From the NCBI GenBank assembly GCA_950097015.1, contig CATNEN010000011.1:1-64000 (forward strand): DNA of 64,000 bases, given 5' to 3'. Within the stretch, counting starts at the first letter, position 1; every line of letters begins with the position of its first letter. Below, piece by piece: positions 16,586-64,000 of this stretch. Under the pieces are notes generated by a model. The model was not told the DNA's origin and did not search any database. It was given only the letters and a program-made list of their open reading frames with translations. Source of the stretch: Macrostomum hystrix (taxonomy: Eukaryota; Animalia; Platyhelminthes). Made by a program: the position numbers and the translations under genes.

Positions 16586-17831
16586 ATGAACGCAGCTAAA
16601 GTTTTATATCTAGCTGCTCCCACAGATGTCTTGTGAAGCAATATCAGAACCAATGATTGCTATTGCAGCTTACAGCTAGCATGCCTGACTTTGAGAGGCG
16701 CAATGTTGCACGCTGATACAGGAACAACCATAGAAAACAATCATGCTCCGTGTAGCGATATAGAACAGCTTTGCGCGTGTTTCTCGCACAGATCGATATA
16801 TGCTGCTATTTCAGAACTAAGGAACTGTGTCTGTGAACTGGGCGCTGAGGCTATAATAAAAATTCCTTGATTGAAACGTGCGTTTGCACACTCTCAATCA
16901 GCAGGAATATAGAAACGCAGCTAGAGTTTCAGCTAGCTGCTCCTACAGATGTCAATATGCTGCAATGTTAGAACTAGGTTCAAGCTTTTTGCAAATCACG
17001 CCGTACATGAAAAAGCGAAAAGAACAACTTGAGCTTCTTGCACGTGCACTAGAACAGCTTTGCACGTTCTGTTTGCAAAGATCAATTTATGCTGCTATTT
17101 AAGCATTTTGAAGGGACACTCAAGGCTGTAGCTAGTTTGCTTAAGTGAAAGTGCTCTTACTCTAGTCAAGAGGAAGATATGAACGCAGCTAAAGTTTTAT
17201 ATCTAGCTGCTCCCACAGATGTCTTGTGAAGCAATATCAGAACCAATGATTGCTATTGCAGCTTACAGCTAGCATGCCTGACTTTGAGAGGCGCAATGTT
17301 GCACGCTGATACAGGAACAACCATAAACAATAAACATAAACATAAACAACCATAAACAACCATAAACAACCATACAGGAACCACAGAAAACAATCATGCT
17401 CCGTGTAGCGATATAGAACAGCTTTGCGCGTGTTTCTCGCACAGATCGATATATGCTGCTATTTCAGAACTAAGGAACTGTGTCTGTGAACTGGGCGCTG
17501 AGGCTATAATAAAAATTCCATGATTGAAACGTGCGTTTGCACACTCTCAATCAGCAGGAATATAGAAACGCAGCTAGAGTTTCAGCTAGCTGCTCCTACA
17601 GATGTCAATATGCTGCAATGTTAGAACTAGGCTCAAGCTTTTTGCAAATCACGCCGTACATGAATAAGCGAAAAGAACAACTTGAGCTTCTTGCACGTGC
17701 ACTAGAACAGCTTTGCACGTGCTGTTTGCAAAGATCGATACATGCTGCTATTTAAGCATTTTGAAGGGACACTCAAGGCTGTAGCTAGTTTGCTTAAGTG
17801 AAAGTGCTCTTACTCTAGTCAAGAGGAAGAT
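16586..17831 (+). repeat. Pair of B monomers with private SNPs at the A/B boundary; the second carries a 60-bp insertion (653 bp)
   Basis: Both units have TTGTGAAGCA, CAATGTTGCAC and GCGTGTTTCTCG, which I did not see elsewhere. Unit spacings are 593 and 653 bp. Confidence 0.9.
17326..17385. other. 60-bp low-complexity insertion built from local sequence (AACAACCATA x3, AAACAT pieces, CAGGAAC)
   Basis: The consensus GATACAGGAACAACCATA|GAAAACAATC is split by AACAATAAACATAAACATAAACAACCATAAACAACCATAAACAACCATACAGGAACCACA; unit length is 593+60. Confidence 0.92.
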
Positions 17832-39506: not shown

Positions 39507-42500
39507 ATGAACGCAGCTAAAGTTTTATATCTAGCTGCTCCCACAGATGTCTTGTGCAGCAATATCAGAACCAATGATTGCTATTGCAGCTTACAGCTAG
39601 CATGCCTGACTTTGTGAGGCGCAATGATGCACGCTGATACAGGAACAACCATAGAAAACAATCATGCTCCGTGTAGCGATATAGAACAGCTTTGCGCGTG
39701 CTTCTCGCACAGATCGATATATGCTGCTATTTCAGAACTAAGGAACTGTGTCTGTGAACTGGGCGCTGAGGCTATAATAAAAATTCCTTGATTGAAACGT
39801 GCGTTTGCACACTCTCAATCAGCGGGAATATAGAAACGCAGCTAGAGTTTCAGCTAGCTGCTCCTACAGATGTCAATATGCTGCTATGTTAGAACTAGGC
39901 TCAAACTTTTTGCAAATCACGCCGTACATGAAAAAGCGAAAAGAACAACTTGATCTTCTTGCACGTGCACTAGAACAGCTTTGCACGTTCTGTTTGCAAA
40001 GATCAATTCATGCTGCTATTTAAGCATTTTTATTAACAATCATGATAATAACAGCATTTAAGCATTTTTATTAACAATCATGATAATAACAATCATGATA
40101 ATAAAAATTCCTTGATTGAAACGTGCGTTTGCACACTCTCAATCAGCAGGAATATAGAAACGCAGCTAGAGTTTCAGCTAGCTGCTCCTACAGATGTCAA
40201 TATGCTGCAATGTTAGAACTAGGCTCAAGCTTTTTGCAAATCACGCCGTACATGAAAAAGCGAAAAGAACAACTTGAGCTTCTTGCACGTGCACTAGAAC
40301 AGCTTTGCACGTTCTGTTTGCAAAGATCAATTCATGCTGCTATTTAAGCATTTTGAAGGGACACTCAAGGCTGTAGCTAGTTTGCTTAAGTGAAAGTGCT
40401 CTTACTCTAGTCAAGAGGAAGATATGAACGCAGCTAAAGTTTTATATCTAGCTGCTCCCACAGATGTCTTGTGCAGCAATATCAGAACCAATGATTGCTA
40501 TTGCAGCTTACAGCTAGCATGCCTGACTTTGTGAGGCGCAATGATGCACGCTGATACAGGAACAACCATAGAAAACAATCATGCTCCGTGTAGCGATATA
40601 GAACAGCTTTGCGCGTGCTTCTCGCACAGATCGATATATGCTGCTATTTCAGAACTAAGGAACTGTGTCTGTGAACTGGGCGCTGAGGCTATAATAAAAA
40701 TTCCTTGATTGAAACGTGCGTTTGCACACTCTCAATCAGCGGGAATATAGAAACGCAGCTAGAGTTTCAGCTAGCTGCTCCTACAGATGTCAATATGCTG
40801 CTATGTTAGAACTAGGCTCAAACTTTTTGCAAATCACGCCGTACATGAAAAAGCGAAAAGAACAACTTGATCTTCTTGCACGTGCACTAGAACAGCTTTG
40901 CACGTTCTGTTTGCAAAGATCAATTCATGCTGCTATTTAAGCATTTTTATTAACAATCATGATAATAACAGCATTTAAGCATTTTTATTAACAATCATGA
41001 TAATAACAATCATGATAATAAAAATTCCTTGATTGAAACGTGCGTTTGCACACTCTCAATCAGCAGGAATATAGAAACGCAGCTAGAGTTTCAGCTAGCT
41101 GCTCCTACAGATGTCAATATGCTGCAATGTTAGAACTAGGCTCAAGCTTTTTGCAAATCACGCCGTACATGAAAAAGCGAAAAGAACAACTTGAGCTTCT
41201 TGCACGTGCACTAGAACAGCTTTGCACGTTCTGTTTGCAAAGATCAATTCATGCTGCTATTTAAGCATTTTGAAGGGACACTCAAGGCTGTAGCTAGTTT
41301 GCTTATGTGAAAGTGCTCTTACTCTAGTCAAGAGGAAGATATGAACGCAGCTAAAGTTTTATATCTAGCTGCTCCCACAGATGTCTTGTGCAGCAATATC
41401 AGAACCAATGATTGCTATTGCAGCTTACAGCTAGCATGCCTGACTTTGAGAGGCGCAATGATGCACGCTGATACAGGAACAACCATAGAAAACAATCATG
41501 CTCCGTGTAGCGATATAGAACAGCTTTGCGCGTGCTTCTCGCACAGATCGATATATGCTGCTATTTCAGAACTAAGGAACTGTGTCTGTGAACTGGGCGC
41601 CGAGGCTATAATAAAAATTCCTTGATTGAAACGTGCGTTTGCACACTCTCAATCAGCAGGAATATAGAAACGCAGCTAGAGTTACAGCTAGCTGCTCCTA
41701 CAGATGTCAATATGCTGCTATGTTAGAACTAGCCTCTAGCTTTTTGCAAATCACGCCGTACATGAAAAAGCGAAAAGAACAACTTGAGCTTCTTGCACGT
41801 GCACTAGAACAGCTTTGCACGTTCTGTTTGCAAAGATCAATTCATGCTGCTATTTAAGCATTTTGAAGGGACACTCAAGGCTGTAGCTAGTTTGCTTATG
41901 TGAAAGTGCTCTTACTCTAGTCAAGAGGAAGATATGAACGCAGCTAAAGTTTTATATCTAGCTGCTCCCACAGATGTCTTGTGCAGCAATATCAGAACCA
42001 ATGATTGCTATTGCAGCTTACAGCTAGCATGCCTGACTTTGAGAGGCGCAATGATGCACGCTGATACAGGAACAACCATAGAAAACAATCATGCTCCGTG
42101 TAGCGATATAGAACAGCTTTGCGCGTGCTTCTCGCACAGATCGATATATGCTGCTATTTCAGAACTAAGGAACTGTGTCTGTGAACTGGGCGCTGAGGCT
42201 ATAATAAAAATTCCTTGATTGAAACGTGCGTTTGCACACTCTCAATCAGCGGGAATATAGAAACGCAGCTAGAGTTTCAGCTAGCTGCTCCTACAGATGT
42301 CAATATGCTGCTATGTTAGAACTAGGCTCAAACTTTTTGCAAATCACGCCGTACATGAAAAAGCGAAAAGAACAACTTGATCTTCTTGCACGTGCACTAG
42401 AACAGCTTTGCACGTTCTGTTTGCAAAGATCAATTCATGCTGCTATTTAAGCATTTTTATTAACAATCATGATAATAACAGCATTTAAGCATTTTTATTA

Positions 42501-45500
42501 ACAATCATGATAATAACAATCATGATAATAAAAATTCCTTGATTGAAACGTGCGTTTGCACACTCTCAATCAGCAGGAATATAGAAACGCAGCTAGAGTT
42601 TCAGCTAGCTGCTCCTACAGATGTCAATATGCTGCAATGTTAGAACTAGGCTCAAGCTTTTTGCAAATCACGCCGTACATGAAAAAGCGAAAAGAACAAC
42701 TTGAGCTTCTTGCACGTGCACTAGAACAGCTTTGCACGTTCTGTTTGCAAAGATCAATTCATGCTGCTATTTAAGCATTTTGAAGGGACACTCAAGGCTG
42801 TAGCTAGTTTGCTTAAGTGAAAGTGCTCTTACTCTAGTCAAGAGGAAGATATGAACGCAGCTAAAGTTTTATATCTAGCTGCTCCCACAGATGTCTTGTG
42901 CAGCAATATCAGAACCAATGATTGCTATTGCAGCTTACAGCTAGCATGCCTGACTTTGTGAGGCGCAATGATGCACGCTGATACAGGAACAACCATAGAA
43001 AACAATCATGCTCCGTGTAGCGATATAGAACAGCTTTGCGCGTGCTTCTCGCACAGATCGATATATGCTGCTATTTCAGAACTAAGGAACTGTGTCTGTG
43101 AACTGGGCGCTGAGGCTATAATAAAAATTCCTTGATTGAAACGTGCGTTTGCACACTCTCAATCAGCGGGAATATAGAAACGCAGCTAGAGTTTCAGCTA
43201 GCTGCTCCTACAGATGTCAATATGCTGCTATGTTAGAACTAGGCTCAAACTTTTTGCAAATCACGCCGTACATGAAAAAGCGAAAAGAACAACTTGATCT
43301 TCTTGCACGTGCACTAGAACAGCTTTGCACGTTCTGTTTGCAAAGATCAATTCATGCTGCTATTTAAGCATTTTTATTAACAATCATGATAATAACAGCA
43401 TTTAAGCATTTTTATTAACAATCATGATAATAACAATCATGATAATAAAAATTCCTTGATTGAAACGTGCGTTTGCACACTCTCAATCAGCAGGAATATA
43501 GAAACGCAGCTAGAGTTTCAGCTAGCTGCTCCTACAGATGTCAATATGCTGCAATGTTAGAACTAGGCTCAAGCTTTTTGCAAATCACGCCGTACATGAA
43601 AAAGCGAAAAGAACAACTTGAGCTTCTTGCACGTGCACTAGAACAGCTTTGCACGTTCTGTTTGCAAAGATCAATTCATGCTGCTATTTAAGCATTTTGA
43701 AGGGACACTCAAGGCTGTAGCTAGTTTGCTTATGTGAAAGTGCTCTTACTCTAGTCAAGAGGAAGATATGAACGCAGCTAAAGTTTTATATCTAGCTGCT
43801 CCCACAGATGTCTTGTGCAGCAATATCAGAACCAATGATTGCTATTGCAGCTTACAGCTAGCATGCCTGACTTTGAGAGGCGCAATGATGCACGCTGATA
43901 CAGGAACAACCATAGAAAACAATCATGCTCCGTGTAGCGATATAGAACAGCTTTGCGCGTGCTTCTCGCACAGATCGATATATGCTGCTATTTCAGAACT
44001 AAGGAACTGTGTCTGTGAACTGGGCGCCGAGGCTATAATAAAAATTCCTTGATTGAAACGTGCGTTTGCACACTCTCAATCAGCAGGAATATAGAAACGC
44101 AGCTAGAGTTACAGCTAGCTGCTCCTACAGATGTCAATATGCTGCTATGTTAGAACTAGCCTCTAGCTTTTTGCAAATCACGCCGTACATGAAAAAGCGA
44201 AAAGAACAACTTGAGCTTCTTGCACGTGCACTAGAACAGCTTTGCACGTTCTGTTTGCAAAGATCAATTCATGCTGCTATTTAAGCATTTTGAAGGGACA
44301 CTCAAGGCTGTAGCTAGTTTGCTTATGTGAAAGTGCTCTTACTCTAGTCAAGAGGAAGATATGAACGCAGCTAAAGTTTTATATCTAGCTGCTCCCACAG
44401 ATGTCTTGTGCAGCAATATCAGAACCAATGATTGCTATTGCAGCTTACAGCTAGCATGCCTGACTTTGAGAGGCGCAATGATGCACGCTGATACAGGAAC
44501 AACCATAGAAAACAATCATGCTCCGTGTAGCGATATAGAACAGCTTTGCGCGTGCTTCTCGCACAGATCGATATATGCTGCTATTTCAGAACTAAGGAAC
44601 TGTGTCTGTGAACTGGGCGCTGAGGCTATAATAAAAATTCCTTGATTGAAACGTGCGTTTGCACACTCTCAATCAGCGGGAATATAGAAACGCAGCTAGA
44701 GTTTCAGCTAGCTGCTCCTACAGATGTCAATATGCTGCTATGTTAGAACTAGGCTCAAACTTTTTGCAAATCACGCCGTACATGAAAAAGCGAAAAGAAC
44801 AACTTGATCTTCTTGCACGTGCACTAGAACAGCTTTGCACGTTCTGTTTGCAAAGATCAATTCATGCTGCTATTTAAGCATTTTTATTAACAATCATGAT
44901 AATAACAGCATTTAAGCATTTTTATTAACAATCATGATAATAACAATCATGATAATAAAAATTCCTTGATTGAAACGTGCGTTTGCACACTCTCAATCAG
45001 CAGGAATATAGAAACGCAGCTAGAGTTTCAGCTAGCTGCTCCTACAGATGTCAATATGCTGCAATGTTAGAACTAGGCTCAAGCTTTTTGCAAATCACGC
45101 CGTACATGAAAAAGCGAAAAGAACAACTTGAGCTTCTTGCACGTGCACTAGAACAGCTTTGCACGTTCTGTTTGCAAAGATCAATTCATGCTGCTATTTA
45201 AGCATTTTGAAGGGACACTCAAGGCTGTAGCTAGTTTGCTTAAGTGAAAGTGCTCTTACTCTAGTCAAGAGGAAGATATGAACGCAGCTAAAGTTTTATA
45301 TCTAGCTGCTCCCACAGATGTCTTGTGCAGCAATATCAGAACCAATGATTGCTATTGCAGCTTACAGCTAGCATGCCTGACTTTGAGAGGCGCAATGATG
45401 CACGCTGATACAGGAACAACCATAGAAAACAATCATGCTCCGTGTAGCGATATAGAACAGCTTTGCGCGTGCTTCTCGCACAGATCGATATATGCTGCTA

Positions 45501-48500
45501 TTTCAGAACTAAGGAACTGTGTCTGTGAACTGGGCGCTGAGGCTATAATAAAAATTCCTTGATTGAAACGTGCGTTTGCACACTCTCAATCAGCGGGAAT
45601 ATAGAAACGCAGCTAGAGTTTCAGCTAGCTGCTCCTACAGATGTCAATATGCTGCTATGTTAGAACTAGGCTCAAACTTTTTGCAAATCACGCCGTACAT
45701 GAAAAAGCGAAAAGAACAACTTGATCTTCTTGCACGTGCACTAGAACAGCTTTGCACGTTCTGTTTGCAAAGATCAATTCATGCTGCTATTTAAGCATTT
45801 TTATTAACAATCATGATAATAACAGCATTTAAGCATTTTTATTAACAATCATGATAATAACAATCATGATAATAAAAATTCCTTGATTGAAACGTGCGTT
45901 TGCACACTCTCAATCAGCAGGAATATAGAAACGCAGCTAGAGTTTCAGCTAGCTGCTCCTACAGATGTCAATATGCTGCAATGTTAGAACTAGGCTCAAG
46001 CTTTTTGCAAATCACGCCGTACATGAAAAAGCGAAAAGAACAACTTGAGCTTCTTGCACGTGCACTAGAACAGCTTTGCACGTTCTGTTTGCAAAGATCA
46101 ATTCATGCTGCTATTTAAGCATTTTGAAGGGACACTCAAGGCTGTAGCTAGTTTGCTTATGTGAAAGTGCTCTTACTCTAGTCAAGAGGAAGATATGAAC
46201 GCAGCTAAAGTTTTATATCTAGCTGCTCCCACAGATGTCTTGTGCAGCAATATCAGAACCAATGATTGCTATTGCAGCTTACAGCTAGCATGCCTGACTT
46301 TGAGAGGCGCAATGATGCACGCTGATACAGGAACAACCATAGAAAACAATCATGCTCCGTGTAGCGATATAGAACAGCTTTGCGCGTGCTTCTCGCACAG
46401 ATCGATATATGCTGCTATTTCAGAACTAAGGAACTGTGTCTGTGAACTGGGCGCCGAGGCTATAATAAAAATTCCTTGATTGAAACGTGCGTTTGCACAC
46501 TCTCAATCAGCAGGAATATAGAAACGCAGCTAGAGTTACAGCTAGCTGCTCCTACAGATGTCAATATGCTGCTATGTTAGAACTAGCCTCTAGCTTTTTG
46601 CAAATCACGCCGTACATGAAAAAGCGAAAAGAACAACTTGAGCTTCTTGCACGTGCACTAGAACAGCTTTGCACGTTCTGTTTGCAAAGATCAATTCATG
46701 CTGCTATTTAAGCATTTTGAAGGGACACTCAAGGCTGTAGCTAGTTTGCTTATGTGAAAGTGCTCTTACTCTAGTCAAGAGGAAGATATGAACGCAGCTA
46801 AAGTTTTATATCTAGCTGCTCCCACAGATGTCTTGTGCAGCAATATCAGAACCAATGATTGCTATTGCAGCTTACAGCTAGCATGCCTGACTTTGAGAGG
46901 CGCAATGATGCACGCTGATACAGGAACAACCATAGAAAACAATCATGCTCCGTGTAGCGATATAGAACAGCTTTGCGCGTGCTTCTCGCACAGATCGATA
47001 TATGCTGCTATTTCAGAACTAAGGAACTGTGTCTGTGAACTGGGCGCTGAGGCTATAATAAAAATTCCTTGATTGAAACGTGCGTTTGCACACTCTCAAT
47101 CAGCAGGAATATAGAAACGCAGCTAGAGTTTCAGCTAGCTGCTCCTACAGATGTCAATATGCTGCAATGTTAGAACTAGGCTCAAGCTTTTTGCAAATCA
47201 CGCCGTACATGAAAAAGCGAAAAGAACAACTTGAGCTTCTTGCACGTGCACTAGAACAGCTTTGCACGTTCTGTTTGCAAAGATCAATTCATGCTGCTAT
47301 TTAAGCATTTTTATTAACAATCATGATAATAACAGCATTTAAGCATTTTTATTAACAATCATGATAATAACAATCATGATAATAAAAATTCCTTGATTGA
47401 AACGTGCGTTTGCACACTCTCAATCAGCAGGAATATAGAAACGCAGCTAGAGTTTCAGCTAGCTGCTCCTACAGATGTCAATATGCTGCAATGTTAGAAC
47501 TAGGCTCAAGCTTTTTGCAAATCACGCCGTACATGAAAAAGCGAAAAGAACAACTTGAGCTTCTTGCACGTGCACTAGAACAGCTTTGCACGTTCTGTTT
47601 GCAAAGATCAATTCATGCTGCTATTTAAGCATTTTGAAGGGACACTCAAGGCTGTAGCTAGTTTGCTTATGTGAAAGTGCTCTTACTCTAGTCAAGAGGA
47701 AGATATGAACGCAGCTAAAGTTTTATATCTAGCTGCTCCCACAGATGTCTTGTGCAGCAATATCAGAACCAATGATTGCTATTGCAGCTTACAGCTAGCA
47801 TGCCTGACTTTGAGAGGCGCAATGATGCACGCTGATACAGGAACAACCATAGAAAACAATCATGCTCCGTGTAGCGATATAGAACAGCTTTGCGCGTGCT
47901 TCTCGCACAGATCGATATATGCTGCTATTTCAGAACTAAGGAACTGTGTCTGTGAACTGGGCGCTGAGGCTATAATAAAAATTCCTTGATTGAAACGTGC
48001 GTTTGCACACTCTCAATCAGCGGGAATATAGAAACGCAGCTAGAGTTTCAGCTAGCTGCTCCTACAGATGTCAATATGCTGCTATGTTAGAACTAGGCTC
48101 AAACTTTTTGCAAATCACGCCGTACATGAAAAAGCGAAAAGAACAACTTGATCTTCTTGCACGTGCACTAGAACAGCTTTGCACGTTCTGTTTGCAAAGA
48201 TCAATTCATGCTGCTATTTAAGCATTTTTATTAACAATCATGATAATAACAGCATTTAAGCATTTTTATTAACAATCATGATAATAACAATCATGATAAT
48301 AAAAATTCCTTGATTGAAACGTGCGTTTGCACACTCTCAATCAGCAGGAATATAGAAACGCAGCTAGAGTTTCAGCTAGCTGCTCCTACAGATGTCAATA
48401 TGCTGCAATGTTAGAACTAGGCTCAAGCTTTTTGCAAATCACGCCGTACATGAAAAAGCGAAAAGAACAACTTGAGCTTCTTGCACGTGCACTAGAACAG

Positions 48501-50131
48501 CTTTGCACGTTCTGTTTGCAAAGATCAATTCATGCTGCTATTTAAGCATTTTGAAGGGACACTCAAGGCTGTAGCTAGTTTGCTTATGTGAAAGTGCTCT
48601 TACTCTAGTCAAGAGGAAGATATGAACGCAGCTAAAGTTTTATATCTAGCTGCTCCCACAGATGTCTTGTGCAGCAATATCAGAACCAATGATTGCTATT
48701 GCAGCTTACAGCTAGCATGCCTGACTTTGAGAGGCGCAATGATGCACGCTGATACAGGAACAACCATAGAAAACAATCATGCTCCGTGTAGCGATATAGA
48801 ACAGCTTTGCGCGTGCTTCTCGCACAGATCGATATATGCTGCTATTTCAGAACTAAGGAACTGTGTCTGTGAACTGGGCGCCGAGGCTATAATAAAAATT
48901 CCTTGATTGAAACGTGCGTTTGCACACTCTCAATCAGCAGGAATATAGAAACGCAGCTAGAGTTACAGCTAGCTGCTCCTACAGATGTCAATATGCTGCT
49001 ATGTTAGAACTAGCCTCTAGCTTTTTGCAAATCACGCCGTACATGAAAAAGCGAAAAGAACAACTTGAGCTTCTTGCACGTGCACTAGAACAGCTTTGCA
49101 CGTTCTGTTTGCAAAGATCAATTCATGCTGCTATTTAAGCATTTTGAAGGGACACTCAAGGCTGTAGCTAGTTTGCTTATGTGAAAGTGCTCTTACTCTA
49201 GTCAAGAGGAAGATATGAACGCAGCTAAAGTTTTATATCTAGCTGCTCCCACAGATGTCTTGTGCAGCAATATCAGAACCAATGATTGCTATTGCAGCTT
49301 ACAGCTAGCATGCCTGACTTTGAGAGGCGCAATGATGCACGCTGATACAGGAACAACCATAGAAAACAATCATGCTCCGTGTAGCGATATAGAACAGCTT
49401 TGCGCGTGCTTCTCGCACAGATCGATATATGCTGCTATTTCAGAACTAAGGAACTGTGTCTGTGAACTGGGCGCTGAGGCTATAATAAAAATTCCTTGAT
49501 TGAAACGTGCGTTTGCACACTCTCAATCAGCAGGAATATAGAAACGCAGCTAGAGTTTCAGCTAGCTGCTCCTACAGATGTCAATATGCTGCAATGTTAG
49601 AACTAGGCTCAAGCTTTTTGCAAATCACGCCGTACATGAAAAAGCGAAAAGAACAACTTGAGCTTCTTGCACGTGCACTAGAACAGCTTTGCACGTTCTG
49701 TTTGCAAAGATCAATTCATGCTGCTATTTAAGCATTTTTATTAACAATCATGATAATAACAGCATTTAAGCATTTTTATTAACAATCATGATAATAACAA
49801 TCATGATAATAAAAATTCCTTGATTGAAACGTGCGTTTGCACACTCTCAATCAGCAGGAATATAGAAACGCAGCTAGAGTTTCAGCTAGCTGCTCCTACA
49901 GATGTCAATATGCTGCAATGTTAGAACTAGGCTCAAGCTTTTTGCAAATCACGCCGTACATGAAAAAGCGAAAAGAACAACTTGAGCTTCTTGCACGTGC
50001 ACTAGAACAGCTTTGCACGTTCTGTTTGCAAAGATCAATTCATGCTGCTATTTAAGCATTTTGAAGGGACACTCAAGGCTGTAGCTAGTTTGCTTATGTG
50101 AAAGTGCTCTTACTCTAGTCAAGAGGAAGAT
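39507..50131 (+). repeat. 2427-bp HOR (B+C, B+C, B*) x4 plus a partial fifth copy
   Basis: B* units with GGGCGCCGAGG, GAGTTACAGC and ACTAGCCTCTAGC start at 41341, 43768, 46195 and 48622 (spacing 2427 = 917+917+593). Confidence 0.96.
40031..40097. other. 67-bp AT-rich filler replacing a 336-bp deletion (first of 17 such junctions); creates the 324-bp half-monomer C
   Basis: ...GCTATTTAAGCATTTT|TATTAACAATCATGATAATAACAGCATTTAAGCATTTTTATTAACAATCATGATAATAACAATCATG|ATAATAAAAATTCC. Other copies start at 40948, 42458, 43375, 44885, 45802, 47312, 48229, 49739, 52996, 53913, 54830, 55747, 56071, 62401, 63318 and 63627. Confidence 0.95.
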
Positions 50132-52471: not shown

Positions 52472-55222
52472 ATGAACGCAGCTAAAGTTTTATATCTAGC
52501 TGCTCCCACAGATGTCTTGTGCAGCAATATCAGAACCAATGATTGCTATTGCAGCTTACAGCTAGCATGCCTGACTTTGAGAGGCGCAATGATGCACGCT
52601 GATACAGGAACAACCATAGAAAACAATCATGCTCCGTGTAGCGATATAGAACAGCTTTGCGCGTGCTTCTCGCACAGATCGATATATGCTGCTATTTCAG
52701 AACTAAGGAACTGTGTCTGTGAACTGGGCGCTGAGGCTATAATAAAAATTCCTTGATTGAAACGTGCGTTTGCACACTCTCAATCAGCGGGAATATAGAA
52801 ACGCAGCTAGAGTTTCAGCTAGCTGCTCCTACAGATGTCAATATGCTGCTATGTTAGAACTAGGCTCAAACTTTTTGCAAATCACGCCGTACATGAAAAA
52901 GCGAAAAGAACAACTTGATCTTCTTGCACGTGCACTAGAACAGCTTTGCACGTTCTGTTTGCAAAGATCAATTCATGCTGCTATTTAAGCATTTTTATTA
53001 ACAATCATGATAATAACAGCATTTAAGCATTTTTATTAACAATCATGATAATAACAATCATGATAATAAAAATTCCTTGATTGAAACGTGCGTTTGCACA
53101 CTCTCAATCAGCAGGAATATAGAAACGCAGCTAGAGTTTCAGCTAGCTGCTCCTACAGATGTCAATATGCTGCAATGTTAGAACTAGGCTCAAGCTTTTT
53201 GCAAATCACGCCGTACATGAAAAAGCGAAAAGAACAACTTGAGCTTCTTGCACGTGCACTAGAACAGCTTTGCACGTTCTGTTTGCAAAGATCAATTCAT
53301 GCTGCTATTTAAGCATTTTGAAGGGACACTCAAGGCTGTAGCTAGTTTGCTTAAGTGAAAGTGCTCTTACTCTAGTCAAGAGGAAGATATGAACGCAGCT
53401 AAAGTTTTATATCTAGCTGCTCCCACAGATGTCTTGTGCAGCAATATCAGAACCAATGATTGCTATTGCAGCTTACAGCTAGCATGCCTGACTTTGAGAG
53501 GCGCAATGATGCACGCTGATACAGGAACAACCATAGAAAACAATCATGCTCCGTGTAGCGATATAGAACAGCTTTGCGCGTGCTTCTCGCACAGATCGAT
53601 ATATGCTGCTATTTCAGAACTAAGGAACTGTGTCTGTGAACTGGGCGCTGAGGCTATAATAAAAATTCCTTGATTGAAACGTGCGTTTGCACACTCTCAA
53701 TCAGCGGGAATATAGAAACGCAGCTAGAGTTTCAGCTAGCTGCTCCTACAGATGTCAATATGCTGCTATGTTAGAACTAGGCTCGAACTTTTTGCAAATC
53801 ACGCCGTACATGAAAAAGCGAAAAGAACAACTTGATCTTCTTGCACGTGCACTAGAACAGCTTTGCACGTTCTGTTTGCAAAGATCAATTCATGCTGCTA
53901 TTTAAGCATTTTTATTAACAATCATGATAATAACAGCATTTAAGCATTTTTATTAACAATCATGATAATAACAATCATGATAATAAAAATTCCTTGATTG
54001 AAACGTGCGTTTGCACACTCTCAATCAGCAGGAATATAGAAACGCAGCTAGAGTTTCAGCTAGCTGCTCCTACAGATGTCAATATGCTGCAATGTTAGAA
54101 CTAGGCTCAAGCTTTTTGCAAATCACGCCGTACATGAAAAAGCGAAAAGAACAACTTGAGCTTCTTGCACGTGCACTAGAACAGCTTTGCACGTTCTGTT
54201 TGCAAAGATCAATTCATGCTGCTATTTAAGCATTTTGAAGGGACACTCAAGGCTGTAGCTAGTTTGCTTATGTGAAAGTGCTCTTACTCTAGTCAAGAGG
54301 AAGATATGAACGCAGCTAAAGATTTATATCTAGCTGCTCCCACAGATGTCTTGTGCAGCAATATCAGAACCAATGATTGCTATTGCAGCTTACAGCTAGC
54401 ATGCCTGACTTTGAGAGGCGCAATGATGCACGCTGATACAGGAACAACCATAGAAAACAATCATGCTCCGTGTAGCGATATAGAACAGCTTTGCGCGTGC
54501 TTCTCGCACAGATCGATATATGCTGCTATTTCAGAACTAAGGAACTGTGTCTGTGAACTGGGCGCTGAGGCTATAATAAAAATTCCTTGATTGAAACGTG
54601 CGTTTGCACACTCTCAATCAGCGGGAATATAGAAACGCAGCTAGAGTTTCAGCTAGCTGCTCCTACAGATGTCAATATGCTGCTATGTTAGAACTAGGCT
54701 CAAACTTTTTGCAAATCACGCCGTACATGAAAAAGCGAAAAGAACAACTTGATCTTCTTGCACGTGCACTAGAACAGCTTTGCACGTTCTGTTTGCAAAG
54801 ATCAATTCATGCTGCTATTTAAGCATTTTTATTAACAATCATGATAATAACAGCATTTAAGCATTTTTATTAACAATCATGATAATAACAATCATGATAA
54901 TAAAAATTCCTTGATTGAAACGTGCGTTTGCACACTCTCAATCAGCAGGAATATAGAAACGCAGCTAGAGTTTCAGCTAGCTGCTCCTACAGATGTCAAT
55001 ATGCTGCAATGTTAGAACTAGGCTCAAGCTTTTTGCAAATCACGCCGTACATGAAAAAGCGAAAAGAACAACTTGAGCTTCTTGCACGTGCACTAGAACA
55101 GCTTTGCACGTTCTGTTTGCAAAGATCAATTCATGCTACTATTTAGGCATTTTAAAGGGACACTTAAGGCTGTAGCTAGTTTGCTTAAGTGAAAGTGCTC
55201 TTACTCTAGTCAAGAGGAAGAT
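52472..55222 (+). repeat. 917-bp (B+C) repeat x3
   Basis: Anchors at 52472, 53389, 54306 and 55223; each B ends in the filler junction. Confidence 0.95.
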
Positions 55223-56057
55223 ATGAACGCAGCTAAAGTTTTATATCTAGCTGCTCCCACAGATGTCTTGTGCAGCAATATCAGAACCAATGATTGCTAT
55301 TGCAGCTTACAGCTAGCATGCCTGACTTTGAGAGGCGCAATGATGCACGCTGATACAGGAACAACCATAGAAAACAATCATGCTCCGTGTAGCGATATAG
55401 AACAGCTTTGCGCGTGCTTCTCGCACAGATCGATATATGCTGCTATTTCAGAACTAAGGAACTGTGTCTGTGAACTGGGCGCTGAGGCTATAATAAAATT
55501 TCCTTGATTGAAACGTGCGTTTGCACACTCTCAATCAGCGGGAATATAGAAACGCAGCTAGAGTTTCAGCTAGCTGCTCCTACAGATGTCAATATGCTGC
55601 TATGTTAGAACTAGGCTCAAGCTTTTTGCAAATCACGCCGTACATGAAAAAGCGAAAAGAACAACTTGAGCTTCTTGCACGTGCACTAGAACAGCTTTGC
55701 ACGTTCTGTTTGCAAAGATCAATTCATGCTGCTATTTAAGCATTTTTATTAACAATCATGATAATAACAGCATTTAAGCATTTTTATTAACAATCATGAT
55801 AATAACAATCATGATAATAAAAATTCCTTGATTGAAACGTGCGTTTGCACACTCTCAATCAGCGGGAATATAGAAACGCAGCTAGAGTTTCAGCTAGCCG
55901 CTCCTACAGATGTCAATATGCTGCTATGTTAGAACTAGGCTCAAGCTTTTTGCAAATCACGCCGTACATGAAAAAGCGAAAAGAACAACTTGAGCTTCTT
56001 GCACGTGCACTAGAACAGCTTTGCACGTTCTGTTTGCAAAGATCAATTCATGCTGCT

Positions 56058-56213
56058 ATTTAAGCATTTTTATTAACAATCATGATAATAACAGCATTTA
56101 AGCATTTTTATTAACAATCATGATAATAACAGCATTTAAGCATTTTTATTAACAATCATGATAATAACAGCATTTAAGCCTTTTTATTAACAATCATGAT
56201 AATAACAATCATG
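56058..56213 (+). repeat. 38-bp minisatellite ATTTAAGCATTTTTATTAACAATCATGATAATAACAGC, ~4 copies
   Basis: Half-unit spacing is 400 = 324+2x38 (55839 to 56239); the copies are directly readable. Confidence 0.93.
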
Positions 56214-56539
56214 ATAATAAAAATTCCTTGATTGAAACGTGCGTTTGCACACTCTCAATCAGCAGGAATATAGAAACGCAGCTAGAGTTTCTGCTAGCTG
56301 CTCCTACAGATGTCAATATGCTGCAATGTTAGAACTAGGCTCAAGCTTTTTGCAAATCACGCCGTACATGAAAAAGCGAAAAGAACAACTTGAGCTTCTT
56401 GCACGTGCACTAGAACAGCTTTGCACGTTCTGTTTGCAAAGATCAATTCATGCTGCTATTTAAGCATTTTGAAGGGACACTCAAGGCTGTAGCTAGTTTG
56501 CTTAAGTGAAAGTGCTCTTACTCCAGTCAAGAGGAAGAT

Positions 56540-59500
56540 ATGAACGCAGCTAAAGTTTTATATCTAGCTGCTCCCACAGATGTCTTGTGCAGCAATATCA
56601 GAACCAATGATTGCTATTGCAGCTTACAGCTAGCATGCCTGACTTTGAGAGGCGCAATGATGCACGCTGATACAGGAACAACCATAGAAAACAATCATGC
56701 TCCGTGTAGCGATATAGAACAGCTTTGCGCGTGCTTCTCGCACAGATCGATATATGCTGCTATTTCAGAACTAAGGAACTGTGTCTGTGAACTGGGCGCT
56801 GAGGCTATAATAAAAATTCCTTGATTGAAACGTGTGTTTGCACACTCTCAATCAGCAGGAATATAGAAACGCAGCTAGAGTTTCAGCTAGCTGCTCCTAC
56901 AGATGTCAATATGCTGCAATGTTAGAACTAGGCTCAAGCTTTTTGCAAATCACGCCGTACATGAAAAAGCGAAAAGAACAACTTGAGCTTCTTGCACGTG
57001 CACTAGAACAGCTTTGCACGTTCTGTTTGCAAAGATCAATTCATGCTGCTATTTAAGCATTTTGAAGGGACACTCAAGGCTGTAGCTAGTTTGCTTAAGT
57101 GAAAGTGCTCTTACTCTAGTCAAGAGGAAGATATGAACCCAGCTAAAGTTTTATATCTAGCTGCTCCCACAGATGTCTTGTGCAGCAATATCAGAACCAA
57201 TGATTGCTATTGCAGCTTACAGCTAGCATGCCTGACTTTGAGAGGCGCAATGATGCACGCTGATACAGGAACAACCATAGAAAACAATCATGCTCCGTGT
57301 AGCGATATAGAACAGCTTTGCGCGTGCTTCTCGCACAGATCGATATATGCTGCTATTTCAGAACTAAGGAACTGTGTCTGTGAACTGGGCGCTGAGGCTA
57401 TAATAAAAATTCCTTGATTGAAACGTGCGTTTGCACACTCTCAATCAGCAGGAATATAGAAACGCAGCTAGAGTTTCAGCTAGCTGCTCCTACAGATGTC
57501 AATATGCTGCAATGTTAGAACTAGGCTCAAGCTTTTTGCAAATCACGCCGTACATGAAAAAGCGAAAAGAACAACTTGAGCTTCTTGCACGTGCACTAGA
57601 ACAGCTTTGCACGTTCTGTTTGCAAAGATCAATTCATGCTGCTATTTAAGCATTTTGAAGGGACACTCAAGGCTGTAGCTAGTTTGCTTAAGTGAAAGTG
57701 CTCTTACTCTAGTCAAGAGGAAGATATGAACGCAGCTAAAGTTTTATATCTAGCTGCTCCCACAGATGTCTTGTGCAGCAATATCAGAACCAATGATTGC
57801 TATTGCAGCTTACAGCTAGCATGCCTGACTTTGAGAGGCGCAATGATGCACGCTGATACAGGAACAACCATAGAAAACAATCATGCTCCGTGTAGCGATA
57901 TAGAACAGCTTTGCGCGTGCTTCTCGCACAGATCGATATATGCTGCTATTTCAGAACTAAGGAACTGTGTCTGTGAACTGGGCGCTGAGGCTATAATAAA
58001 AATTCCTTGATTGAAACGTGCGTTTGCACACTCTCAATCAGCAGGAATATAGAAACGCAGCTAGAGTTTCAGCTAGCTGCTCCTACAGATGTCAATATGC
58101 TGCAATGTTAGAACTAGGCTCAAGCTTTTTGCAAATCACGCCGTACATGAAAAAGCGAAAAGAACAACTTGAGCTTCTTGCACGTGCACTAGAACAGCTT
58201 TGCACGTTCTGTTTGCAAAGATCAATTCATGCTGCTATTTAAGCATTTTGAAGGGACACTCAAGGCTGTAGCTAGTTTGCTTAAGTGAAAGTGCTCTTAC
58301 TCTAGTCAAGAGGAAGATATGAACCCAGCTAAAGTTTTATATCTAGCTGCTCCCACAGATGTCTTGTGCAGCAATATCAGAACCAATGATTGCTATTGCA
58401 GCTTACAGCTAGCATGCCTGACTTTGAGAGGCGCAATGATGCACGCTGATACAGGAACAACCATAGAAAACAATCATGCTCCGTGTAGCGATATAGAACA
58501 GCTTTGCGCGTGCTTCTCGCACAGATCGATATATGCTGCTATTTCAGAACTAAGGAACTGTGTCTGTGAACTGGGCGCTGAGGCTATAATAAAAATTCCT
58601 TGATTGAAACGTGCGTTTGCACACTCTCAATCAGCAGGAATATAGAAACGCAGCTAGAGTTTCAGCTAGCTGCTCCTACAGATGTCAATATGCTGCAATG
58701 TTAGAACTAGGCTCAAGCTTTTTGCAAATCACGCCGTACATGAAAAAGCGAAAAGAACAACTTGAGCTTCTTGCACGTGCACTAGAACAGCTTTGCACGT
58801 TCTGTTTGCAAAGATCAATTCATGCTGCTATTTAAGCATTTTGAAGGGACACTCAAGGCTGTAGCTAGTTTGCTTAAGTGAAAGTGCTCTTACTCTAGTC
58901 AAGAGGAAGATATGAACGCAGCTAAAGTTTTATATCTAGCTGCTCCCACAGATGTCTTGTGCAGCAATATCAGAACCAATGATTGCTATTGCAGCTTACA
59001 GCTAGCATGCCTGACTTTGAGAGGCGCAATGATGCACGCTGATACAGGAACAACCATAGAAAACAATCATGCTCCGTGTAGCGATATAGAACAGCTTTGC
59101 GCGTGCTTCTCGCACAGATCGATATATGCTGCTATTTCAGAACTAAGGAACTGTGTCTGTGAACTGGGCGCTGAGGCTATAATAAAAATTCCTTGATTGA
59201 AACGTGCGTTTGCACACTCTCAATCAGCAGGAATATAGAAACGCAGCTAGAGTTTCAGCTAGCTGCTCCTACAGATGTCAATATGCTGCTATGTTAGAAC
59301 TAGGCTCAAGCTTTTTGCAAATCACGCCGTACATGAAAAAGCGAAAAGAACAACTTGAGCTTCTTGCACGTGCACTAGAACAGCTTTGCACGTTCTGTTT
59401 GCAAAGATCAATTCATGCTGCTATTTAAGCATTTTGAAGGGACACTCAAGGCTGTAGCTAGTTTGCTTAAGTGAAAGTGCTCTTACTCTAGTCAAGAGGA

Positions 59501-61876: not shown

Positions 61877-63317
61877 ATGAACGCAGCTAAAGTTTTATAT
61901 CTAGCTGCTCCCACAGATGTCTTGTGCAGCAATATCAGAACCAATGATTGCTATTGCAGCTTACAGCTAGCATGCCTGACTTTGAGAGGCGCAATGATGC
62001 ACGCTGATACAGGAACAACCATAGAAAACAATCATGCTCCGTGTAGCGATATAGAACAGCTTTGCGCGTGCTTCTCGCACAGATCGATATATGCTGCTAT
62101 TTCAGAACTAAGGAACTGTGTCTGTGAACTGGGCGCTGAGGCTATAATAAAAATTCCTTGATTGAAACGTGCGTTTGCACACTCTCAATCAGCGGGAATA
62201 TAGAAACGCAGCTAGAGTTTCAGCTAGCTGCTCCTACAGATGTCAATATGCTGCTATGTTAGAACTAGGCTCAAACTTTTTGCAAATCACGCCGTACATG
62301 AAAAAGCGAAAAGAACAACTTGATCTTCTTGCACGTGCACTAGAACAGCTTTGCACGTTCTGTTTGCAAAGATCAATTCATGCTGCTATTTAAGCATTTT
62401 TATTAACAATCATGACAATAACAGCATTTAAGCATTTTTATTAACAATCATGATAATAACAATCATGATAATAAAAATTCCTTGATTGAAACGTGCGTTT
62501 GCACACTCTCAATCAGCAGGAATATAGAAACGCAGCTAGAGTTTCAGCTAGCTGCTCCTACAGATGTCAATATGCTGCTATGTTAGAACTAGGCTCAAGC
62601 TTTTTGCAAATCACGCCGTACATGAAAAAGCGAAAAGAACAACTTGAGCTTCTTGCACGTGCACTAGAACAGCTTTGCACGTTCTGTTTGCAAAGATCAA
62701 TTCATGCTACTATTTAGGCATTTTGAAGGGACACTTAAGGCTGTAGCTAGTTTGCTTAAGTGAAAGTGCTCTTACTCTAGTCAAGAGGAAGATATGAACG
62801 CAGCTAAAGTTTTATATCTAGCTGCTCCCACAGATGTCTTGTGCAGCAATATCAGAACCAATGATTGCTATTGCAGCTTACAGCTAGCATGCCTGACTTT
62901 GAGAGGCGCAATGATGCACGCTGATACAGGAACAACCATAGAAAACAATCATGCTCCGTGTAGCGATATAGAACAGCTTTGCGCGTGCTTCTCGCACAGA
63001 TCGATATATGCTGCTATTTCAGAACTAAGGAACTGTGTCTGTGAACTGGGCGCTGAGGCTATAATAAAAATTCCTTGATTGAAACGTGCGTTTGCACACT
63101 CTCAATCAGCGGGAATATAGAAACGCAGCTAGAGTTTCAGCTAGCTGCTCCTACAGATGTCAATATGCTGCTATGTTAGAACTAGGCTCAAGCTTTTTGC
63201 AAATCACGCCGTACATGAAAAAGCGAAAAGAACAACTTGAGCTTCTTGCACGTGCACTAGAACAGCTTTGCACGTTCTGTTTGCAAAGATCAATTCATGC
63301 TGCTATTTAAGCATTTT

Positions 63318-63369
63318 TATTAACAATCATGATAATAACAGCATTTAAGCATTTCTATTAACAATCATG
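63318..63369. other. Contracted filler (52 bp; one 15-bp AACAATCATGATAAT copy lost)
   Basis: Half-unit spacing is 309 = 324-15; it also carries the SNP ATTTCTATTA. Confidence 0.9.
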
Positions 63370-63626
63370 ATAATAAAAATTCCTTGATTGAAACGTGCGT
63401 TTGCACACTCGCAATCAGCGGGAATATAGAAACGCAGCTAGAGTTTCAGCTAGCCGCTCCTACAGATGTCAATATGCTGCTATGTTAGAACTAGGCTCAA
63501 GCTTTTTGCAAATCACGCCGTACATGAAAAAGCGAAAAGAACAACTTGAGCTTCTTGCACGTGCACTAGAACAGCTTTGCACGTTCTGTTTGCAAAGATC
63601 AATTCATGCTGCTATTTAAGCATTTT

Positions 63627-63731
63627 TATTAACAATCATGATAATAACAGCATTTAAGCATTTTTATTAACAATCATGATAATAACAGCATTTAAGCCTT
63701 TTTATTAACAATCATGATAATAACAATCATG
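63627..63731. repeat. Filler with ~3 copies of the 38-bp unit (105 bp)
   Basis: Half-unit spacing is 362 = 324+38. Confidence 0.92.
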
Positions 63732-64000
63732 ATAATAAAAATTCCTTGATTGAAACGTGCGTTTGCAGACTCTCAATCAGCAGGAATATAGAAACGCAGC
63801 TAGAGTTTCTGCTAGCTGCTCCTACAGATGTCAATATGCTGCAATGTTAGAACTAGGCTCAAGCTTTTTGCAAATCACGCCGTACATGAAAAAGCGAAAA
63901 GAACAACTTGAGCTTCTTGCACGTGCACTAGAACAGCTTTGCACGTTCTGTTTGCAAAGATCAATTCATGCTGCTATTTAAGCATTTTGAAGGGACACTC

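Follow-up and report, generated by a model that had tools for sequence, protein, structure and literature searches.

Satellite arrays diversify by insertions and deletions and are homogenized by unequal exchange, and it is rarely possible to read the mutation that founded a monomer variant. Higher-order repeats form by unequal exchange, as in the primate alpha satellite, and it is already established that satellite monomer variants born from indels can be captured in higher-order repeats, that microhomology-based repair takes part in satellite dynamics, and that polymerase theta (Pol theta) leaves scars in evolving genomes. In Drosophila, a study of satellite spread is said to have proposed microhomology-mediated processes as the way in which new satellite loci are seeded.

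Two lines of published work describe junctions that can be compared with a scar of this type. In snap-back synthesis-dependent MMEJ (SD-MMEJ), a short stretch of synthesis is primed by a 3' tail that has folded onto an inverted repeat, after which the nascent end anneals to a microhomology on the opposite side and the inserted bases join a longer inverted repeat (PMC5728401). In C. elegans, the signature of Pol theta consists of templated inserts taken from near the break with iterative priming, and deletions fall into classes of about 7-13 bp at nuclease breaks and 50-200 bp at replication-associated breaks (PMC4490562; PMC4032859). Of the Pol theta junctions described, more than 80% show a microhomology of 1 nt or longer. 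In a limited full-text search of the literature, we found no report of a templated repair scar that had become a satellite monomer and been amplified, and none that describes satellites of the present kind in Macrostomum.

We studied a window of 64,000 nucleotides (C11:1-64000) from the flatworm Macrostomum hystrix. It opens a contig of 6.6 Mb, one of the 42 that make up a 220-Mb assembly. To place its repeats, we built a fuzzy-anchor map of C11 from 1 to 114 kb, in which the window proved to be a single satellite array throughout, made up of long monomers (types A and B and a mixed zone) and of a short monomer, C, interleaved with B (Table 1). Our main reading is that C was created by one templated deletion-insertion in a B-type 593-bp monomer and was then amplified, to which we give a probability of about 0.9. 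The C11 array extends to about 85.7 kb, with remnants as far as 102 kb. Two insertions, one of 4.4 kb (C11:69121-73537) and one of 4.8 kb (C11:85673-90483), break it up and show in the map as multi-kilobase interruptions at 68.8-73.7 kb and 85.5-90.9 kb. A separate array of the same satellite family lies on the minus strand of contig C3, from at least 20 kb to 55 kb (20175-55338), with units of 575-594 bp (575/590/592-bp units in recurring patterns) and no short monomer. Both arrays are near contig starts. Between 21242 and 31850, the window also holds a second higher-order pattern, independent of C, in which 593-, 592- and 579-bp monomers recur in order (e.g. 593-592-593-579-593-579). No match to Rfam was found in the window.

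Table 1. Positions in the window of the satellite zones, the C junction and its parts, and the higher-order repeats. Positions within the B monomer are written B1, B2 and so on.
Feature	Position	Strand	Remark
577-bp A monomers	1-16.5 kb and again 33-38 kb		Fuzzy-anchor map
Mixed zone of 593/579/587/592-bp units	16.5-33 kb		Fuzzy-anchor map
593-bp B monomers interleaved with short units	40 kb onward		Fuzzy-anchor map
Left breakpoint flank, B242-257	40015..40030	+	Identical at 17/17 sites
Canonical 67-bp filler, first copy	40031..40097	+	
Minimal core of the filler, 14 nt	40031..40044	+	
Right breakpoint flank, B1-14	40098..40111	+	Identical at all sites; head motif specific to the C11 B type
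Two perfect 36-nt direct copies of the junction	40018..40091	+	40018-40053 and 40056-40091, 2-nt spacer
Perfect 15-bp tandem duplication, 2.5 units	40072..40108	+	Spans the filler/right-flank boundary
Inverted repeat, arms of 13 nt, 92%	40064..40108	.	Arms 40064-40076 and 40096-40108
10-nt template (B477-486), as it stands in one full B monomer	40574..40583	+	
[C B C B B] 2427-bp higher-order repeat, four copies	40008..49715	+	0, 1, 5 or 6 differences between copies
[C B] 917-bp higher-order repeat units	52973..56447	+	3-9 differences; [C B] block at 52973-56047, then a closing C-C pair with the 143-bp filler
Outlying C copies 62378 (1 SNP), 63295 (52-bp filler) and 63604 (105-bp filler)	62378..63965	+	

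To count the junctions, we performed an exact scan with a 16-nt left anchor ending at 40030 and a 14-nt right anchor starting at 40098 (coordinates of the first copy). The left anchor occurred 103 times; 86 copies ran into the normal continuation and 17 into a filler followed by the right anchor. The first-pass annotation had reported 17 sites at which the B monomer makes the same jump, with 336 bp lost and usually 67 bp gained, and both statements hold: the breakpoints and filler recur at all 17, the loss is 593 − 257 = 336 bp, and the filler is 67 bp long at 14 of the 17, which yields a monomer of 257 + 67 = 324 bp. The three remaining fillers are 52 bp (63302), 105 bp (63611) and 143 bp (56055). 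Thirteen of the 67-bp fillers are identical, and one has a single SNP (62385). In the fuzzy-anchor map we found 18 short monomers (15 of 324 bp and one each of 309, 362 and 400 bp); 17 are in the window and the eighteenth is just beyond it, with the monomer at C11:65152 and the junction at C11:65175. Comparison of the junctions, which had been proposed as a check, showed breakpoints identical at both ends in all 17 window copies, and with the copy at C11:65175 included, the left breakpoint, the right breakpoint and the filler core are the same in 18/18. The repeated junction is clearly beyond chance.

The B monomer into which this junction is set (e.g. 40098-40690) is itself an old head-to-tail dimer of subrepeats of roughly 270-300 bp. 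B38-122 and B307-391 are 78% identical, B198-390 is about 70% identical to the half that follows it, and B198-251 and B502-555 are about 87% identical. The 336 bp missing from C correspond roughly to the second subrepeat. Elsewhere in the C11 array, at C11:66411-66424, a single-copy monomer of 403 bp carries a simple deletion of about 190 bp that joins B13 to about B205 with 1 nt of homology and without filler; it is an unamplified counterpart to the C event.

We next describe the filler, which Tandem Repeats Finder (TRF) and a repeat finder resolved mostly into duplications of the junction itself. Each 36-nt copy consists of left flank (B245-257), the 14-nt core and the first 7 nt of the right flank; together with its 2-nt spacer it forms a 38-bp unit, present in 2 to 4 copies among the C monomers. 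The 15-bp duplication is bounded by a 3-nt repeat and occurs in 1-2 copies overall, with one unit absent from the 52-bp variant (63302). Because the length variants are exact unit multiples (52 = 67 − 15; 105 = 67 + 38; 143 = 67 + 2 × 38), the 38-bp and 15-bp units must have altered in copy number after the origin of the junction. The 36-nt block holds both flanks and the core as one piece and was therefore copied from an already joined product. What had been described as a 67-bp patchwork of independent patches thus reduces to a 14-nt core, a 36-nt junction duplicate and a 15-bp duplication, and since everything else duplicates the finished junction, only 14 nt (40031-40044), not 67, call for a repair explanation. 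No intermediate with the filler absent or 0-40 nt long was found in the whole assembly, and because no such copy survives, the 14-nt founding state is one that we infer. The 38-bp and 15-bp duplications may have arisen in either order.

The templates of the core are local. Its first 5 nt and the 5 nt that close the left flank are jointly an exact reverse complement of B2-11, which abuts the right breakpoint; the remaining 10 nt equal B477-486, share 1 nt with the inverted tract, and have their template within the deleted part, 107 bp upstream of the right breakpoint. The inserted bases in this way lengthen a 5-nt inverted microhomology into a 10-nt perfect inverted repeat, and the same 10-nt perfect core, within the longer inverted repeat at 40064..40108, pairs the start of the filler with B2-11 of the right flank. 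The sequence around the junction is AT-rich, and none of 200 shuffles folds as well as the assembled junction does (z = −2.84). In another monomer, which is 653 bp long, a 10-bp microsatellite of about 6 units lies directly upstream of the B477-486 10-mer (17316-17374); because it has expanded there, we regard this neighborhood as slippage-prone.

To assess these matches, we compared them with two null models, shuffled cores and random sequence of matched composition. An internal match of at least 10 nt had P = 0.005-0.023, and covering the 14-nt core with no more than two tracts, each with a priming match of 1 nt or longer, had P = 0.0016-0.0038. The earlier claim had been that every piece of the filler has a local template. 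All four of the matches it named are real (B245-257 direct, B1-7 direct, the reverse complement of B2-11, and B477-486 direct), and the two direct-flank pieces are parts of the 36-nt junction duplication; the argument from complete coverage is weak, however, as 3-6% of shuffled 14-mers are also fully covered by local 7-mers (P about 0.03-0.06 for coverage by 6-7-mers), and we rejected 7-mer coverage as evidence of templating on this ground. The real templating signal is the 10-mer together with the primed inverted tract. In C11 1-114 kb, C3 20-60 kb, C11 140-150 kb and C30, a search that took in 154 kb of the two arrays with their surroundings, no longer template of at least 12 nt was present, and single 11-mer matches occurred at chance level. 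Short AT-rich matches are common and the templates were identified post hoc, and the significance of the templating is moderate. Very probably the core was copied from the local monomer, or its 10-mer possibly retained from it, in a pattern that was picked out post hoc.

An end-joining route is, on balance, the account of the core that we favor, with snap-back SD-MMEJ, a reaction attributed to polymerase theta, as the best explanation. In a B monomer, one complex deletion-insertion would have removed 336 bp, possibly with whole monomers in addition, and added a short templated insert with 14 irreducible nucleotides. After a presumed double-strand break, and in the sequence of events that we assume, the right end would act first: its 3' tail, on the bottom strand, would gain the complement of a 10-mer that is present 107 bp upstream. 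This tail would then snap back on its own flank and copy 10 nt, the final 5 of which would anneal to the five bases that end the left flank. The finished junction would have been partly duplicated (the 36-nt block with its 2-nt spacer and the 15-bp tandem unit) to give the 67-bp filler, either within the founding event or later through slippage.

Several features of the scar bear on this route. Templated inserts, as in TMEJ and SD-MMEJ, are present in the form of the B477-486 10-mer and the inverted copy of B2-11 at the right breakpoint. Snap-back is indicated by the growth of the 5-nt inverted microhomology into a 10-nt perfect inverted repeat, with the new end microhomologous to the other side. 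Homology amounts to 5 nt between left flank and inverted tract, 1 nt between the two tracts, and 0 nt at the right junction. Deletion size departs from the described pattern, being at least 336 bp compared with published classes that derive from one species; with flanks that are periodic, the real loss could equal 336 + n × 593 bp. The junction keeps the order of the parent monomer (B257, then B477-486, then B1), and the 10-mer, being collinear, may for this reason be an island retained between two jumps rather than a copy.

With respect to the enzyme, the first-pass annotation had read the junction as a signature of POLQ-mediated end joining or synthesis-dependent MMEJ. The geometry does fit snap-back SD-MMEJ, but the enzyme is read from the shape of the scar and template switching gives the same product; a single scar cannot identify the enzyme, and we put Pol theta forward only tentatively. 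The plant name TEBICHI, offered alongside, is inapplicable because the organism is a flatworm. We did find a Pol theta-like gene in the assembly (C41:2607617-2614901, minus strand), with at least one short intron within the polymerase part. Its family A polymerase domain (C41:2607617-2609230, minus strand) matched human Pol theta best (E 2.6e-60), with weaker matches to Pol nu (3e-39) and Pol I (1e-30), and a Hel308/PolQ-type helicase domain (PF20470) is located 5.4 kb upstream of it on the same strand. The presence of this gene is no more than permissive evidence for the Pol theta route. A second, weaker family A polymerase locus is found at C2:4650145-4653794.

Replication could produce the same junction without a double-strand break or Pol theta, by serial template switching or slippage (serial replication slippage, FoSTeS/MMBIR type). 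The nascent strand would have made two forward jumps and one jump onto the opposite strand, and the small duplications would be further slips. The collinearity of the 10-mer, if retained, suits this account, as do the AT-rich, hairpin-prone character of the junction (z = −2.84), its proneness to slippage (2-4 copies of the 38-bp unit and 1-2 of the 15-bp unit) and the microsatellite expanded beside the same 10-mer at 17316-17374. No sequence feature contradicts it. Snap-back end joining nevertheless predicts more specifically the inverted tract with its terminal 5-nt match to the other flank, and we consider template switching a serious but rather unlikely origin for the scar.

A stepwise origin, in which two independent simple deletions (about 219 and 107 bp) left the 10-bp island and AT-rich slippage filled the rest, is improbable. 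It too would make the 10-mer collinear, and the simple single-copy deletion with 1-nt homology nearby (C11:66411-66424) indicates that deletions recur in the array. Such an origin needs two rare events in one monomer ahead of any amplification, has no surviving intermediate in the assembly, and leaves the 4-5 nt between left flank and island still in need of a source.

The direction of change can be read from the other variants of the satellite. All of them keep the 336 bp, including the A type, which is 6-8% diverged, the subtype at 78-85 kb and the whole C3 array, and the head motif B1-14, which supplies the inverted template, is confined to the B subtype of C11, with a different head in the other subtypes and in C3. 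On these two grounds C is derived from B. Units near 324 bp were absent from the C11 map outside 40-65 kb and from the C3 array. In their first halves, neighboring B monomers are 98-100% identical to the 257 bp of C and share with them the same two haplotypes. Because both breakpoints are identical in 18/18 copies, C arose once, and the proposal that one event created the 324-bp monomer is borne out by these breakpoints, by the shared filler core and by the derivation from B. Identical breakpoints, an ancestral state in outgroup arrays and a restricted distribution are the marks of a derived monomer with one origin, and a single origin followed by amplification is well supported.

It is conversely conceivable that the 324-bp unit is ancestral and B a derived dimer, or that the junction is an assembly error; both ideas draw on real features, since B is an old dimer in its own right, built of subrepeats of roughly 270-300 bp with 70-78% identity, and the array sits at a contig end. 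Against reversed polarity, the 257 bp of C match the first halves of neighboring B monomers at 98-100%, whereas the two halves of B are only 70-78% alike, and C is restricted to 25 kb whereas full-length units are everywhere, C3 included; we rejected C as the ancestral monomer on these observations. Against an artefact, the 18 copies have their own SNPs and length variants in several contexts, unlike consensus errors. We regard this pair of explanations as very improbable. Copy numbers are those of the assembly, in which a satellite at a contig end is possibly misassembled; that the junction itself is an artefact is very unlikely, given its own variants in several contexts.

The filler had been expected to occur only in this satellite context, and both whole-assembly searches agree. 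BLAST of the 67-bp filler against the 220-Mb assembly gave matches in C11 40-65 kb only. A pattern search with the 25-nt filler core (at most 3 mismatches) across the whole assembly gave 39 forward matches, all in the C11 array, and 0 reverse matches, with 0 matches for the reversed control. Metagenome contigs gave no match to the filler, a blank scan that carries little weight. Capture of foreign DNA at breaks is known in general, but the idea that the filler is a foreign or dispersed fragment (transposon, organelle) drew no result of this analysis in its favor, is largely refuted by the confinement of both the 67-bp and the 25-nt queries to this array alongside the blank metagenome contigs, is made needless by the local templates of the core, and can be given scarcely any credence.

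Finally, we examined how C is distributed along the array. The previously suggested spread into 917-bp and 2427-bp higher-order repeats is confirmed by the block map and by the 0-9 differences between copies. Identity between higher-order repeat copies is 99.0-100% (99.75-100% for the 2427-bp copies) and far exceeds that between the constituent monomers (324 vs 593 bp), as in satellite higher-order repeats. C occurs in four contexts: within the 2427-bp unit, within the 917-bp unit, in C-C pairs (55724/56048 and 63295/63604), and followed by an A-type monomer (49716 and 65152). Over 1.5 kb, identity between the two C-A contexts is 98.2%; between the two C-C contexts it is about 97%. In the upstream half, one or the other of two haplotypes is present, distinguished by four sites. 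The block at 62378-63965 is related to 54807-57634 through a larger segmental duplication. We interpret the pattern of spread as the product of repeated unequal exchange or segmental tandem duplication at several scales. The 324-bp unit would have been multiplied by these processes into CB (917 bp) and CBCBB (2427 bp), while the 38-bp and 15-bp units would have gone on varying in copy number. The same pattern marks the C family as young relative to the A/B split and to the split between the C11 and C3 arrays.

Taken as a whole, this case is a clear, well-preserved example and not a new principle, a tidy but ordinary route to satellite variants. One contig is enough to follow the polarity, the single origin, the local templates and the subsequent spread, which makes the locus a good teaching and illustrative case and a candidate for genotyping across populations or sister species. 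It does not change what is known of satellite evolution or of end joining, and the enzyme assignment stays an interpretation. The fullest version of the repair reading, in which the junction is the fossil of a single Pol theta snap-back repair that founded a new monomer, a nested 38-bp minisatellite and two higher-order repeats, is doubtful; if true, it would be a base-by-base record that connects the birth of structural variants in a satellite with a repair pathway known by name.

Compared with Pol theta end-joining and SD-MMEJ scars in C. elegans and Drosophila (PMC4490562, PMC4032859, PMC5728401, PMC2943611), the C junction has the same combination of a deletion and an insert templated next to the break. 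The insert consists of more than one tract in both orientations, and a longer inverted repeat was created along with a 5-nt microhomology to the other end. Unlike those scars, the right junction of C is without microhomology, the deletion is 336 bp or 336 + n × 593 bp, and one template is 107 bp away from the breakpoint, farther than the few tens of base pairs seen there; moreover, the C scar is fixed in a tandem array in many copies, and its dependence on the enzyme is putative. Higher-order repeats of the alpha-satellite type likewise contain a distinct monomer variant in multi-monomer units, with copies 99.0-100% alike and monomer types less so. The C variant differs from them in being a large deletion-insertion rather than a product of point divergence, in containing a nested 38-bp minisatellite, and in belonging to a small flatworm array (about 85 kb) at a contig end. 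With the proposal for satellite spread in Drosophila, the flatworm locus would share error-prone, microhomology-based repair as a source of structural novelty in satellites; whereas that proposal concerns the seeding of new loci, the event described here remodeled a monomer within an existing array.
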